Origin: Geosiphon pyriformis uo1
Taxonomy: Eukaryota; Fungi; Glomeromycota
DNA: 64,000 nt
Assembly (NCBI GenBank): GCA_016748015.1
Contig: JAAOMT010000094.1
Location: forward strand, 1 to 64,000
Direction: 5' to 3'
Under the pieces are notes generated by a model. The model was given only the letters and a program-made list of their open reading frames with translations. It was not told the origin of the DNA and ran no database searches. Below are positions 5,201 through 14,760 of the stretch, in pieces (position 1 is the first letter of the stretch; every line of letters begins with the position of its first letter). Both the position numbers and the translations under genes were made by a program.

Positions 5201-6106
5201 TTATATAACATATAATCAAACATCCCATATATATATTGTATTTGAATTAAAATTTGAAATTGCAAATTAATAACTAAAATTTGATATGGAATGAAATTAT
5301 TATAAATTTAATATATAGTGTGATTAAATATGATTTTATTTATTCTGCTTATTTGAAAATCAACGTTTTTAGCTTTCTTTAAATAGACCTCTTTTAATCT
5401 TTTTCACAGTTAACTTAATATTGAGAAAATAATTAATAAAAAGAGTTTTTTCTAACCGTTAATTGTATTCAATTATCCACCTAAAATACATGCTGTTATT
5501 CAATCGGTCAGACTTTATCAAAGTTTTCTAGATAATGCACATATTAGTGTTTTTGCTTACATATGTGAAGAACATAGATGGGGAATAACTTTATTATTCA
5601 GCGGCAAAACTCATCAACTTTAAATAGGAAATTTAATATTGTTACAAAATTCCGAAATATCATGTTTCACATATATATGATCGTTACTTTTTACTTTTGT
5701 AAAATCAAATATTTCAAAGCGAAAATCCAAGAGGGAAAGTAATTGCTTGTACCAACAGGCTGGATGTTTTTTTATTCAAAATTTTGCTTCTAGATGTATT
5801 AAATTCAATGATAAATTATAGAACACAATCTAGATCTTTTTTGGTAAGAAAATCATTTTTTGCTGTGCAGTGTACGAAAAGAACTTTCTGGTTTGGAGAA
5901 TTTGAATATCACCTGGTTGTCACACACAGATATATGCACAAAAAACTATAAAATCTCATTTTATTCACCTAATTATGAGTTGCTGTAAGTAAACGACTTC
6001 TTTTTTATTTTGGCAATTTTCAAAATTTTCCTGGTATCCACAATTTCATAAAAACTAGCAAAATCCTATTATTTTTTGTAAATTATTTCCTTCGCGTGAG
6101 CAAAAA

Positions 6107-7617
6107 ATGAATTCGACGAAATTCGACTTAGGAGATGCTGGCTTCGTTCTACTTTCGACGATATTAGTATGGTTTATGACACTAGGGGCTGGATATTTTT
6201 ACAGTGGAATGCCTCGTCAAAAAAATGCACTTTCTATCATCCTATCATGCGTTACCGTGGTTACAGTGCGAGTAAGTTGAGACATATCCAGAAGTTTTTA
6301 TTCAAACATATTGATTGAAACAATTTTTTCAAAGTTGACAAACAAAATCTTTGATCTGTCAGTCGTTTCTTTTCGGATGCGGCTTGGCTTTTTCCAAAAG
6401 TGAGAATAAATTGATCGGAAATTTTCTCAAGGCCTTATTTCTTAATCTTGCAATGAGACCTCCTGGTAATGAATACTCTGAGCCATCTGAAATCTTTCGA
6501 GAATGCATTATTTGTGCTGAAAAATTCAAGATTTCAATGGAATCATTTTTGGGTGCTACTGAAAAATGTGTCCATCAGATTAATGTGTGTCAAAGTTGTG
6601 TTACAGCCCATATTACTCATGAGCTTGAAGATAAAGGTAATTTTCGAATTTTATGTCCAAACGGAGACGGATGTACGAATGTTATGGAAGAGAGTGATGT
6701 GAAGAGGTTTTCTAGTATGGCAATATATGAGAGGTGAGACACAAAAATGACTTAAATTGAGTTAATTAACGAAAGAAAAATACCATTTCAATTGACCTAA
6801 ATTTTTATGTTTAGATATCAAAGATTAACACTAAATCTCGCTCTGTCACAAATTCCTGAATTTCATTGGTGCTTAAGCTGCAATGCTGGCCAAATTCATG
6901 TGGATGGAGGTAAGATTGAACGATTTTTAGATCCATCACTTTCATGGTCTTTGGGAACCTTTCAAAATTGCACATATAACAATTCTATTTCAAATTCACC
7001 ATATTTTTCCCTCTTTTGACAGTGGCAGCACCAATAATGACTTGTACAGAATGCTCACAGAAGACTTGCATCATACATAACTTGCCAATTCACACTGGCC
7101 TAGAATGTTCTCAATGTGCATCTGAAAAGTCTTCTTTAACAGTGGCTTCTACATCAAAAAGTCAGTTTTTCGCGCGATCAAGAAAAAATATTTTTCATTT
7201 TGCGACGAAACTCCTACCCAATAAAATAGAATCCCCGGAAAAAGCCCGAAAAAAACGAGAGAAAAACTTGGCAAAACTAAAACAGAAAAGGGTGAAGGCA
7301 GAGTCGTTGACTGAAGCCTTGATTAAAGCCGAGACGAAAGCGTGTCCTAAATGCATGGCAAAAATTCAAAAAAATGGTGGCTGTGATCATATGACTTGTA
7401 GGGCTCCTGGTTGCGGGTTTGAGTTTTGTTGGTTGTAAGTCTCTACAACAATTCCGGATTTTTTCAATTTGGAATTATAAAGAAATAAAACTACTATATT
7501 GAACTATTTATAATATTTTTTAGTTGCTTAGCAAATTTCGACTTTATACGCAATGAAGGAAACCACCGGCATCAAGTAGATTGCACACATTGGGCGAAAC
7601 CACCTTTGGATTTGTAA
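6107..7617 (+). CDS. Five-exon chimeric gene: ammonium transporter (Amt/Mep) N-terminal segment fused in frame to an RBR (RING1-IBR-RING2) E3 ubiquitin ligase, about 378 aa
   Basis: Exons 6107-6271, 6363-6733, 6815-6909, 7023-7434 and 7524-7617 have GT-AG introns and form one open frame. The N-terminus [35 protein letters not shown]...[10 protein letters not shown]...IGNF matches Amt TM1-TM2. It is followed by RING1 (CIIC...CVH..VCQSC...CP..C), IBR (CLSC...CTEC...CIIH...H...C) and RING2 with the catalytic [10 protein letters not shown]. Confidence 0.85.
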
Positions 7618-8217
7618 AAAGTCAACAACGGTCAAATGGATATTTTAGAATTATAAATAAAGTTCACCCAGCTCCCTCGAACTATCTGGTTAGATATCTT
7701 TGAAAAAATTTACGATCGAAAAGAGTAATAATCAAGATATGTTGGAATTTTAATTATTACATATATCAACATAATTTTAGTTACTATTTTATCTATAGAA
7801 TATCTTGGTATTTTGTAGCAAACTAAGTCATAAGTAACCAATTTTTGTATTTTAACTTTTGTTATTTATAGTCATCTCATTTTTTAAATTTGCCATTATA
7901 ATAATAACAATTGATCTAGGTATTATATAAAAAGATTACAAAAATGTATAAAAAGAAAAAAAATTGATATACAAGATCAATTTATTACATAATTGCTATA
8001 TTCTTTCAACTCAAAGTAAATTGGCTAATTCTAATGAAATAACAACTTTACTTGGAAGTCTACACAAAAAAAATTTGTGCAGATAATATAAATTGACTGC
8101 AAGTTTTTTGTGATCTTTTTAACACAAATTTTTGAGATAATTCTCAGGTAAAAGGTTTTTATTTGCTTCAAAGTATTTTAACCAATATCAATTCATATGT
8201 TTTATTTTCTTGGACAG

Positions 8218-9348
8218 ATATATTTATAATGGCGAGATTTCCCTTAATGAATATGGAATACCTATTATTTTAAAATTGTTTATTACCGCTGACAAGCTTA
8301 TTCTAGAGAATGTTATTGATTACCTTGAAGACTATTTGATTGAACACCACCCAAAAGAGCTAGAAAAATGTTTTGCCACTTTGCACAGACTTCATTTATC
8401 CATGATTCTTTCAAAAAGTTACAAAATTTCCGCACCGAAATAGTTGCTATCAATCCAGCTATAGTTTTCAACTCGCAAGATTTCACCTCCCTTAGTGAAA
8501 ATACTCTTTCCTCAATTTTAACTCGGGATGATTTAAATATAGAAGAATCTAAGATATGGGAAAAGATTGCGGAATGGGGAGTTGCCAAATTAGATCAAAA
8601 TATTCAGATGACAAACTTTAACGCCTTTGAGGGATCTATTGAAAGACTTTTACTTTTAATCCGCTTCTTCAACATATATTCAGTTGATTTCTATCACAAA
8701 GTAAAACCATTTGCGAGAATCATACCTGGAACTTTATACATCATTATCTCGTACCTGATAGTCTTCAAAAGTCTGTAGACGCTCAGCCATTAGGTTGTTC
8801 TCGATTGAATATTGATTCAAAGCTTCTTAAATCGCATAATATAAAGCAGCTAGATCATTAGATTCAAGGCAAAGATGAAAGTACTCCTTTTGATGATCAA
8901 CTTGAAAATGATTTTAAACTTTTACTTCAAGGTAGTCGAGACGGATTCACTCCAGCCATCAATTATGCGATAATAAAGGAGCAACTGTAAGCGTAATCAA
9001 AGTGAAAGGAACTGATCAGCTAATTGGTGGCTATAACCCACAATCGTGTCATTCTCACAATCAACGATTAGATGGAGAAGGAAGTTTTATTTTTTCCCTT
9101 AGAGATGGCAAAGCTGGGAATGTTCAACTTTGTAAATTTATTGAAGGATATAGACTTTATGGTGATTTAGAATATGGAACTTATTTCGGAGGTAGCAGTA
9201 TTCGGCTGGCAAGGATTTTAAAAATATTCCAGGGTGCTTTTATGACAAGATAACAGATTATGAGGATGCCATAATGCCTGGATCAGAAAATCAAAGGATA
9301 AGATTTTTTGGTGAGGAGTATAAAGTGTTTCAAACTATAAAAAAATAA
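8218..9348 (+). pseudogene. BTB/BACK-TLDc domain pseudogene, 5'-truncated
   Basis: Motifs YIYNGEISL...ADKLILE, LTRDDLNIEESKIWE..WG, LIRFFNI, FKLLLQGSRDGF and LIGGYNP...SFIFSL. Frameshifts near 8385 and 8960; in-frame stops near 8776 and 8858. BTB N-terminal exon not seen. Confidence 0.85.
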
Positions 9349-10996
9349 AATGCGGTTTAATTTAATTAATTTAATTATACATTTCTGAAGATTGTTCACC
9401 CTATCTTACAAATTTTTTACTGGCAAAGATTTTCTAGCCTACTATTTTAACCCCCACAATAAAGTTAAAATAATATCAAAAAAACTTGAGAACTTATCAA
9501 TTGTTTCGATAAAAAGCGATCTTTGAAGTTGAGGTATTTATCACAGGCTAGAACATAAACACTTTTTAGCTAAATATCATACTTTGGCTTCTCCGCTAAA
9601 TAAAGTGCAAACTTTTAAATGACATTTTAGTTTTCACTTGACAATAAAATAAAATAAAATATTTTTAATAAATATCAAATAATAAAACTTTAAGAGATTG
9701 TAAAACATGCGAAGGTTTTCAATCAAATATAATCTCAACTTCGAGATGCTAACTCCTTAATTAAATAGACATCTTCTAAACAATATTTTTTTAAAAACTG
9801 AGTTTTTTTATGATAAACTCGGAATATATAATTCATTGATTTAAGTATTATACAGTATATTAACAATTTTACCTTAATTTACTTCTTTAAAGAATTAGTC
9901 TATTTCCCTAAAGATAAGAAATTACGTCTATAATTAATTATTGATCATTAATGAAATTTATCCTCTTTGTTTAAAGTTTATATCTTTTATTATATATTAT
10001 ATTTAGACGACTCTTCATAGATCCAATCGTGATTAGATATCATAATTTTTAAACTCTATAATGAAATTATTATTATTATTGATTTGATATGTGATAAAAA
10101 ACAATATTCCCTCCTATTTTTTCAAAGTTTACTAATTCATTATTTGCTCACTGAGTCAATCCAATGTTGTAAATTCCTACGTATTCTCGATCATGTTGTA
10201 GGATTGTGTGAGTGTTTAGGTCACAACGATCAGTTTTCTTGAACTCTTATTAATTGAACATGTTAAACTATGAATAATCGAAGTAGCTTTAGTACACAAA
10301 GACGTCAAACAAGTTTCCCATTATTCTTTTGCCTAAACGAGTAGTTCTGAGTTCTGTGAATAAGACATAATCACTTCTTAAATGCGTTAAGCTGATTCAA
10401 AAACATAAAAACTGAACAACATTGTGAATTACAATTTTATGAGTACTTATTAAATAACTTATTATTTATATATAAAGATTTTTCTACTAAAAATTGTTAT
10501 ATTTTGGTTCATTAATCAAACGAGGAAAGTGAATACTCTCTACCTTGTTGGTTTTTTTCCTATGATGTGAGGCGAAATAAAACCTATTACTTCGGCTGGT
10601 TGACCTTATACAGTCGAAAAATGATTTTTTGACCTAATCTGATTTCAAAGTGTTTCCTTAGCTTGTGGAATCTTCTTCCTCACTCTTTATTAGTGACGTT
10701 ACCAATAAGATTTAAACTAGTATAATTTATAAAAAATTGATAGTTTTGTGATAATGATTAATTACATCAAACAAAAAAAATTCATCAATTTTATATTATT
10801 ATAAATTAGGATAAAAAACTAAAAAATAGTAGAAAAAAAATTAAAATGTTATATAACTGCGATTCAAAATAATATAAATATATTAGCTGCAATTCATATA
10901 ATAATTTTTCGTTTTTAATTTTAACTTAATTTTTATATTTTAACTATTAAATATGAAACTTTTATTAACAAAACTCTTATTTTAATTAATACCAAA

Positions 10997-13453: not shown

Positions 13454-14760
13454 ATGTATAAAATTCTCAATACAACCAACGTTTTATTAATCCTATTGAT
13501 ATTTTCGATTAGTGGAAAATCACAACGATTAATTGATCTTACACGGGATATTGATTTTTTTCGAACATTAAGGTTGGCGGCACATAACTCAAATCTTATT
13601 TATTGCGTGGGGGATGAAGATGACGAACAATATTTTCGCTTTATGAAAGGTATTAATTAATTAATTTAGATTTTGAGAATTTAAAAAAGCTCATTTAATT
13701 AATTTTGTTATTCTATCTTGAAGTTAAAATTGCAGTAGATAAATTCAGCAGATCAATGATTGTTTCTTTTAAGGGTAACAAAAATTTATATAAATCAAAA
13801 TTTTTATCATCATAGAATAACAATATTCTAATGAAAATGAGGAATCAAATCATGAATTATTTAATTTGCTGATCAAAGGACGTGAGCTGACAAAAGATCA
13901 ATGGGCAAATCAAAGCACTCAACTGATAGCCTATGAAGCAAATGGATCTCGATCCAATCAATTGATTTTGGTCGAGAAAGATTGGCACTACTCCGTGGGT
14001 TGTCTAATAAATCGCCAATTGAGAATATCCTTTTTGTGGGACATTCAATTGGTGGTGGTACGTTTTTAAAATGAAAAAAGGTTTATAAAAATTCAAATGA
14101 AAAATTATTAAAATTTCCCAAAAAAATTTACAGCTTATGCAACAATCGCTGGACTGACATGGACATTGGAAACATCTCTAATCGACAGGCGTAACGAATT
14201 TCCTTTAATAAAATTTTCTACTGTGAAAATTTCTGCTATTACATTTGGTGCCCCGAGGGTTGGTAACCGTATATTTGCCCGAGTGGTAAACCAACTATTA
14301 AAAGTTAAAAGAATCACCTATTTTAACGATCACGTTCCACATTTTCCTCCGCGTGAGGTTGGAAATAATCTTTTGGAACATTTTGAGACAGAGTATTGGA
14401 TTTTGCCATGTGAATGTTCACCGGGAAAAAATGATGAAAATTATTTATTTTATGAGTGTAAGGGTTTTGAATATCCCAAAAAAAGTCAGAAATACGATGA
14501 TCAGCTTACTTTCAAACTCTTGTTCCCGTATGGGGACTCGGTCACCTCTGGAGAAAATGAGGTTAGTCTTGATTAATATTTTTATTGATGGATAGATGTT
14601 CAGTTAAAGCAACTTAATTTTTTATCATTTTTAATTTTCAAAGAATTGTAATGCTGGCCAGTCAATAAATGATGTAACGGGTAATTTTATACATAAAGGA
14701 CCATATTTTGGTATAAAAATGAATGATTGTAGTCTGAATAATATTCAAATAAATCTTTGA
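13454..14760 (+). pseudogene. Class 3 lipase paralogue A (signal peptide; intact GHSIG nucleophile elbow but apparently frameshifted)
   Basis: Five exons. Motifs SFKG, FVGHSIGG|AYA, ITFGAPRVGN, DHVPHFPP, EYW..CEC and HKGPYFG..C. In exon 3 the frame shifts near 14000, between KDWHYSV and NILFVGHS, with an apparent deletion. Confidence 0.75.

Follow-up and report, generated by a model that had tools for sequence, protein, structure and literature searches.

A transcribed chimeric gene of Geosiphon pyriformis joining the start of an ammonium transporter gene to a predicted RBR ubiquitin ligase

How does a reading frame that opens as an ammonium transporter come to close as a ubiquitin ligase, is such a gene transcribed, and what might its product do? 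These questions are raised by a locus at positions 6107-7617 of a 64,000-nucleotide stretch of DNA, hereafter the window, from the fungus Geosiphon pyriformis uo1 (GenBank assembly GCA_016748015.1, contig JAAOMT010000094.1, positions 1 to 64,000); positions given without a contig name are numbered in the window, and the gene and its parts lie on its forward (+) strand. A prediction made from the sequence letters had proposed that the locus is an intact fusion of the N-terminal part of an Amt/Mep ammonium transporter with an RBR-type E3 ligase. We show here that it is a single-copy, transcribed chimeric gene of Geosiphon pyriformis, which arose at the DNA level with its introns retained. As to its product, the reading that we consider rather probable is that of an expressed, lineage-specific RBR ligase, predicted as such from its domains, with a hydrophobic N-terminus derived from Amt.

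Two parental genes and a sharp junction

The gene comprises five exons, which in a script check form an open frame of 1137 nucleotides (nt), or 378 codons, without internal stops; its introns measure 91, 81, 113 and 89 nt and all four are bounded by GT..AG, bearing out the intact frame and the four canonical introns that had been predicted. Exon 1 (6107-6271) is Amt-derived and encodes a short N-terminus, the first transmembrane helix (TM1, residues ~13-31), a loop with the motif PRQKN and the first part of the second helix (TM2). Intron 1 (6272-6362, 91 nt) was copied along with the AMT piece and is spliced out in cDNA. Exon 2 (6363-6733) begins with a further Amt-derived part (6363-6450), encoding the end of TM2 and the loop that follows it (LAFSKS..LIGNF..), passes through eight bases of junction filler that match neither parent (6451-6458) and continues with RBR-derived sequence encoding RING1 (6459-6733). 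The IBR domain is divided between exon 3 (6815-6909) and exon 4 (7023-7434), the latter of which goes on to encode a long basic helical linker and then the beginning of RING2, Cys331 included, in the motif GGCDHMTC; exon 5 (7524-7617) provides the end of RING2, a tail and a TAA stop codon (7615-7617). The spliced translation is identical over its 378 residues to GenBank KAG9305061.1 (label P0120), a "hypothetical protein G9A89_007701" of Geosiphon pyriformis; the gene model is thus already in GenBank, without a functional name. DNA searches with both halves show that the chimera is single-copy in the genome, which was searched over 128 Mb in 792 contigs.

Profile searches on the spliced protein returned the anticipated combination of a partial Ammonium_transp match with IBR matches. 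Exon 1 on its own matches the Pfam family Ammonium_transp (E 7.5e-7, 28.6 bits against a cut-off of 23.2, profile positions 2-42) and the whole protein does so at residues 13-79 (E 2.9e-9, 36.6 bits against the same cut-off), the latter match covering just positions 2-70 of the 399 in the profile. The whole protein further matches IBR at residues 178-239 and IBR_2/IBR_1 at 311-354, with weak RING matches at 101-160; exon 4 alone matches the IBR families at ~1e-10, and the RING and IBR matches of exons 2 and 3 are weak. Among PDB sequences, residues 3-86 match Mep2/AmtB and residues 299-354 match the RING2 of parkin/ARIH1. An AlphaFold2 model, run with an alignment of 30 family members, has a mean predicted local distance difference test score (pLDDT) of 76, rising above 90 through RING1, IBR and RING2 but not in the linker; it displays a long helix at residues 282-314 ahead of RING2 and low-confidence helices at 10-28, 41-58 and 71-85. 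Foldseek gives a probability of 1.00 to ARIH1, HOIL-1, ARIH2, HOIP, parkin and RNF216.

Pfam and Foldseek both recover the order RING1-IBR-RING2 that typifies RBR ligases. The zinc ligands of RING1 (C103, C106, C124, H126, C131, C134, C153 and C159), IBR (C198, C201, C218, C221, C226, H229/H234, C239 and C242) and RING2 (C318, C321, C336, C341, C346 and C349) form complete sets, all of them common to the RBR parent described below. Further, C331 in GGCDHMTC aligns with the cysteine of GGCMHM in the RING2 of parkin, which we take to be catalytic there and hence, by alignment, here; with every ligand and Cys331 present, the prediction of a complete RBR with intact zinc ligands and a catalytic cysteine is upheld. 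The eleven-helix Amt pore is not found in the chimera, its homology to the transporter ending at 6450, at residue 85 in the loop after TM2. The features of the Amt pore, namely the twin-His, the Phe gate and the binding site, sit in later helices. The Amt part is a fragment and not a transporter.

Both parental paralogues, a search for which the original prediction had proposed as a check, could be found in the same genome, on contigs C441 and C701. A DNA search with 5900-6480 gave a sole other genomic match, C441:45304-45862, at 84-88% identity, and the product of the C441 gene is 100% identical to GpyrAMT1 (AGO45860.1 / U3LZ95). GpyrAMT1, 2 and 3, the trio of transporters that Ellerbeck et al. 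2013 described (cited in PMC4879785), lie in tandem on C441. Homology to GpyrAMT1 extends over 5913-6450 at 85-96% identity. Within this span, 5913-6106, a candidate promoter and 5' untranslated region (UTR) copied from GpyrAMT1, is 85% identical to the C441 sequence upstream of the GpyrAMT1 start, where the parent has extra blocks of 41 and 48 bp; exon 1 is 87% identical to its counterpart, with two in-frame 9-bp deletions; and 6363-6450 is 88.5% identical to GpyrAMT1 exon 2. The alignment shows that the PRQKNALS loop and the position of the fusion point within exon 2 had both been read correctly, while the Amt-derived part, put at about 90 residues, comes to 84 codons. The chimera thus owes to GpyrAMT1 ~190 bp of upstream region, the start codon, exon 1 with TM1, the loop and TM2, an intron 1 that is placed as in the parent, and the first 88 nt of exon 2 with the post-TM2 loop; unlike GpyrAMT1, it keeps just 84 of the 465 codons, has neither the pore nor nine of the eleven helices, and has invariant residues replaced. 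The presence of the upstream region together with the start codon lends structural support to the proposal that an AMT promoter was captured.

The RBR parent was recovered by a DNA search with 6440-7900 at C701:2014000-2015375, which is 86% identical to the window from 6459 to ~7825. It corresponds to G9A89_017282 (P0001), a member of a tandem cluster of RBR paralogues at ~1.988-2.072 Mb on C701, and its homology to the chimera begins at its codon 59. Identity amounts to 92% for the exon 2 part, 93.7% for exon 3, 87% for exon 5 and 85% for the 3' flank, where homology ends near 7825; hence, 7618-7825 is a 3' UTR or flank copied along with the RBR piece. The two genes share the three downstream intron positions, 82% protein identity over the RBR part, and the same zinc ligands and catalytic cysteine; in contrast, the parent possesses its own promoter and its own soluble 58-residue N-terminus, which is missing from the chimera and has the Amt piece in its stead. 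At the junction, the filler bases 6451-6458 and one leftover AMT base restore the frame, and the filler holds an in-frame ATG at 6453-6455 (Met86).

The locus therefore shows two known parents, non-overlapping regions of homology to them, a sharp breakpoint and retained introns, as expected of a chimera formed at the DNA level. Intron 1 stands at the position it has in the AMT parent and introns 2-4 at those of the RBR parent; since all the introns are retained, the pieces were copied as DNA and not via mRNA. An origin by retroposition was accordingly rejected, all four introns being kept at parental positions. Neutral-looking divergence stands at 15% for the upstream region of AMT origin and at 11-19% for the introns and 3' flank of the RBR piece, and this similarity on both sides of the junction fits one event or two close in time. 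Drosophila jingwei and Sdic are classic young chimeric genes formed from partial duplicates, in which one piece gives the promoter and N-terminus and that piece then evolves fast. The Geosiphon gene, too, is new and combines parts of two parental genes; however, it belongs to another organism and other gene families, and both its pieces are DNA copies with introns, whereas part of jingwei was retroposed.

Some further observations concern the parental genes and their families. Intron 1 of the chimera is 95.6% identical to that of GpyrAMT1 on C441 (4 differences in 91 nt), closer to the parent than the exons (87-88%) or other noncoding sequence (~85%; Fisher p 0.003). An element in this intron common to the AMT paralogues was not seen, the intron not being conserved in the other paralogues; gene conversion or a shared element could account for the high identity. 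The genome model of GpyrAMT1, P0248 (KAG9284191.1, G9A89_002850), runs to 695 residues as against the 465 of the cDNA-derived protein P0128, and is probably merged or over-extended. On the RBR side, the annotation of P0001 (323 residues) omits 27 IBR residues, which the beginning of its exon 4 (L021) encodes in frame and which the chimera model includes; a wrongly chosen splice acceptor is the probable cause. Full-length AMT genes number six in the genome, on C441, C718, C785 and C729, twice the three that have been characterized. In addition, a decayed AMT copy with many stop codons is found at C718:2161242-2162320 on the reverse (-) strand, ~3 kb from an intact AMT at C718:2165457-2166748; thus, the AMT family leaves ordinary pseudogenes in this genome too.

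Transcription across the junction

Evidence on the junction and its transcription comes from three runs of one sample from a single study, the contigs of which were placed on positions 5700-8000. No run recorded as RNA contains the stretch, and a search for contigs encoding P0120 yielded none. Run X1 behaves as DNA, in that its contigs cover introns and intergenic sequence and lack spliced joints. An X1 contig of 423 nt matches 6325-6747 exactly and so spans the junction, which is hence genuine in short reads; separate X1 contigs for each of the parents part from the window at precisely 6450 and 6459.

Run X2 is recorded as 'DNA?', yet it contains intron-less contigs with GT..AG joints and adaptor remnants, and its depth is zero in the intergenic bins and in intron 3; from these spliced contigs we infer that it is a cDNA library of the same sample. 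Its record 9 (374 nt, with adaptor at both ends and a depth of 13) joins 6049-6271 to 6363-6482 with no mismatches and no gaps. Intron 1 is thus removed at the predicted GT..AG borders (joint 6271>6363). The contig starts in the 5' leader copied from AMT, crosses the filler and ends 24 bases inside the RBR part, so that the absence of junction-spanning reads, which would have refuted the original prediction, is not what was observed. Record 9 can come solely from the chimera, because the AMT parent is just ~87% identical there. Record 10 (1176 nt) represents mostly the mRNA of the parent RBR; however, its segment 6813-6907 has no differences from the chimera, while the parent differs at six sites, and at 7047, 7059 and 7081 it has the letters of the chimera. 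This de Bruijn contig is a mosaic, the middle of which, including the intron 3 joint, derives from the chimera transcript. There is no ATG between 6049 and 6107, and the ATG at 6107 has an A at -3; the first ATG of the observed 5' end is thus that at 6107, making the chimeric frame the expected product.

These contigs also bear on the notion that the locus is an artefact of assembly or a gene fragment carried by a transposon. The flanks are indeed repetitive, with scattered low-copy repeats upstream and a BTB/BACK family from ~8117; but an exact DNA contig and a cDNA contig each cross the junction, on which ground an assembly artefact was rejected. Capture by a transposon is likewise without support: the chimera is single-copy, its flanks are unrelated repeats, and the search for terminal inverted repeats bracketing it (in which Helitron ends were not specifically modelled) gave no convincing case, the best pairs being AT-rich, 14-27 nt long and 72-93% complementary. 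We consider the probability of either origin to be negligible.

Unequal evolution of the two halves

Nei-Gojobori estimates against the respective parent give, for the 84 codons of the Amt part, a nonsynonymous divergence (dN) of 0.144 and a synonymous divergence (dS) of 0.102, and hence a dN/dS ratio (omega) of 1.4; for the 291 codons of the RBR part they are 0.082 and 0.136, with an omega of 0.60 (RING1 0.50, IBR 0.84, linker 0.73 and RING2 0.45). The original prediction had named a dN/dS near 1 as the sign of a neutral, dead chimera: this is what is seen in the Amt-derived leader, while the ligase departs from it. Comparison with noncoding sequence draws the same line, nonsynonymous divergence being 12.9% in the Amt part versus 15.3% in noncoding sequence (p 0.42), and 7.8% in the RBR part versus 15.8% in its introns (p 0.0003). 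Replacements in the Amt part, polarized with 111 other AMTs as outgroups, fall on the chimera's side in 15 cases and on the parent's in three, with four ambiguous (binomial p 0.0075); the corresponding counts for the RBR part, with 28 family members as outgroups, are 11, 9 and 29. The Amt half thus changes at a neutral rate, almost solely on the chimera's side. Change in the ligase half does not outpace that of the expressed parent, both running at about half the intron rate. The RBR half is therefore not decaying, and we infer that it is kept by purifying selection approximately at its parent's level. The exonic insertions and deletions relative to the parents tell of the frame: all four are multiples of three (two of 9 bp in exon 1, and one each of 3 and 6 bp in exon 4), while those in introns and flanks are of any length. 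A conserved ligase coupled to a remodelled transporter piece is the pattern that a recruited anchor or leader would show.

This asymmetry has to be set against the possibility of a young chimera without function, which is transcribed by way of the AMT promoter while its protein is mis-inserted, with the RBR in the lumen of the endoplasmic reticulum, or unstable, and which is drifting to loss. The neutral rate of the Amt half would fit such a fate, as would the status of the gene as a singleton surrounded by repeats, no relative having the fusion, and the marginal contrast between synonymous and nonsynonymous change in the RBR part (p 0.07). Yet nonsynonymous change in the RBR part proceeds at half the rate of the introns and does not exceed that of the expressed parent, the zinc ligands and the catalytic cysteine are all intact after ~14% neutral divergence, and the four exonic insertions and deletions respect the frame where those of introns and flanks do not. 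On balance, we view a functionless chimera as possible, if unlikely.

What has changed in the Amt part is also informative. Where all 111 of 111 AMTs agree, the chimera carries P26L, W56S and S62G, and it has Q55R at a position invariant in 110 of 110, along with a three-residue deletion in TM2 relative to AMTs; the remarks in the original prediction that TM2 is shortened and its Q-W changed to R-S were therefore both accurate. The family-invariant residues of TM1-TM2 are hence not all retained, and the loss of P26, Q55, W56 and S62 argues against an Amt-like packing having been kept. This bears directly on the earlier suggestion that the TM1-TM2 hairpin might dock the ligase beside or inside GpyrAMT trimers and ubiquitinate them under an AMT1-type promoter and nitrogen control. 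TM1 and TM2 take part in the subunit contacts of AmtB/Mep2 structures, and the fragment comes from GpyrAMT1 itself, with its upstream region and with both helices; however, the replacement of residues invariant in 110-111 of 111 AMTs and the deletion of three TM2 residues would be unexpected if packing were selected. Docking on Amt trimers is thus disfavoured by the loss of family-invariant residues, and we hold it to be very improbable. As a separate matter, R37 in the R-x-K-N loop, an arginine in every one of the 111 outgroups, is preserved in the chimera, where GpyrAMT1 has H; this indicates that the substitution arose in the parent after the duplication.

Membrane topology, relatives and setting

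The mechanism that we put forward is as follows. As the sequence shows, a 5' piece of GpyrAMT1 was joined in frame, through the eight filler bases, to an RBR copy devoid of its promoter and first 58 codons. The AMT piece would now supply transcription, the start codon and a hydrophobic N-terminus, and would no longer behave as transporter sequence. TM1 might then serve as a signal-anchor by which a cytosolic RBR E3 is held at the membrane, while the weakened TM2 fails to span it, or else the hairpin might be re-oriented; the outcome would be a membrane-localized ligase expressed where GpyrAMT1 is expressed. An anchoring TM1 with a non-spanning TM2, or a re-oriented hairpin, is the most economical reading because the ligase half looks selected, and some RBR-family relatives with N-terminal hydrophobic segments offer a precedent. 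For this particular signal-anchor mechanism, which is purely our inference, we would put the chances at about even.

The topology is of consequence, as native Amt proteins have their N-terminus out and the loop in, and an RBR cannot work outside the cytosol. In a crude hydrophobicity sum, in which lower values are the more hydrophobic, TM1 of the chimera is more hydrophobic than that of GpyrAMT1 (-0.03 vs +2.29) and TM2 is less so (+1.39 vs -0.86), a result that is not decisive, the scale having been crudely applied; the reservation on topology that accompanied the original prediction therefore stands. In another reading, the AMT piece is only a promoter and leader and an RBR-only product is made from Met86 via a downstream start site or leaky scanning. 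It would find some backing in the in-frame ATG exactly at the junction and in the lack of amino-acid constraint on the Amt-derived codons, but in the cDNA the first AUG is the one at 6107, which lies in frame and in a favourable context, the frame has survived two 9-bp deletions and the 8-base filler, and TM1 grew more hydrophobic instead of decaying. We accordingly give an RBR-only product little credence.

Several points weigh against an expressed ligase with an Amt-derived hydrophobic N-terminus. Apart from the crudeness of the hydrophobicity comparison, TM2 of the chimera is still hydrophobic (Kyte-Doolittle 2.04), and the native Amt topology would place the RBR outside the cytosol. The cDNA consists of two partial, unstranded contig pieces from one run of one sample, whose record reads 'DNA?' and whose cDNA status we deduced. 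The selection tests rest on 84 and 291 codons and assume neutral introns and symmetric branches; the contrast between synonymous and nonsynonymous change in the RBR part is by itself not significant, the asymmetry of 15:3 versus 11:9 has a p of 0.086, and no orthologue is available to show retention across species.

In searches for relatives, exon 2, which holds the junction, had 119 hits among 1.84 billion representative proteins, the best being the RBR parent over residues 27-123. Not one of the 119 pairs RING1 with residues 1-11; the matches of P0012 and P0025, both weak and not inspected, start at residues 12 and 22. When residues 1-90 were used in a word search, the protein itself was the sole match; this search is of low sensitivity, having missed even GpyrAMT1. 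A search with the RBR parent returned the chimera and, otherwise, RBRs of other Glomeromycotina, 35-49% identical at the nearest, and no paper was found that joins 'ammonium transporter', 'RBR' and 'chimeric gene'. The fusion thus looks specific to the Geosiphon lineage and undescribed beyond its automatic "hypothetical protein" entry.

A hydrophobic segment N-terminal to the RBR is nevertheless present in 6 of 127 family hits. P0005 (Cetraspora pellucida) and P0105 resemble the chimera in having strongly hydrophobic segments ahead of their RBR domains; however, these segments have no Amt homology. Further, the animal RBR ligases RNF144A and RNF144B have a transmembrane domain (PMC7458406). 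They share with the chimera a minimal RBR core on a membrane anchor, which in the chimera is predicted; in contrast, their anchor is a single C-terminal helix and that of the chimera an N-terminal transporter fragment, and they are not specifically related to it, its best PDB matches being ARIH1, HOIL-1, ARIH2, HOIP and parkin. Membrane-tethered RBRs are thus a kind of protein already known. To our knowledge, though, no anchor has been recruited from the first two helices of a transporter.

Knowledge of both parents, of the precise breakpoint, of the upstream region that was copied along and of a spliced transcript across the junction makes the locus an unusually well-documented birth of a new gene by fusion, set in an early-diverging symbiotic fungus. 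Geosiphon pyriformis houses the nitrogen-fixing cyanobacterium Nostoc. Since GpyrAMT1 is a characterized transporter of this Nostoc-hosting fungus, a ligase under an AMT1-type promoter is a testable candidate link between ammonium transport and ubiquitination. Were the docking on Amt trimers to hold after all, it would amount to a self-made feedback control on ammonium uptake from the nitrogen-fixing Nostoc partner; should the chimera be inert, it would nonetheless illustrate the ease with which expressed chimeras form in such repeat-rich genomes.

Two neighboring features of the window may be added. The BTB/BACK member downstream of the chimera occupies ~8117-9400 onward and belongs to a family of more than 238 copies at ~80% identity, Pfam BACK being matched by an open reading frame at 8368-8778. 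Further along, an open frame at 14166-14576, on the forward strand, has a Pfam Lipase_3 match (E 5e-9) that takes in the C-terminal part of that domain alone.

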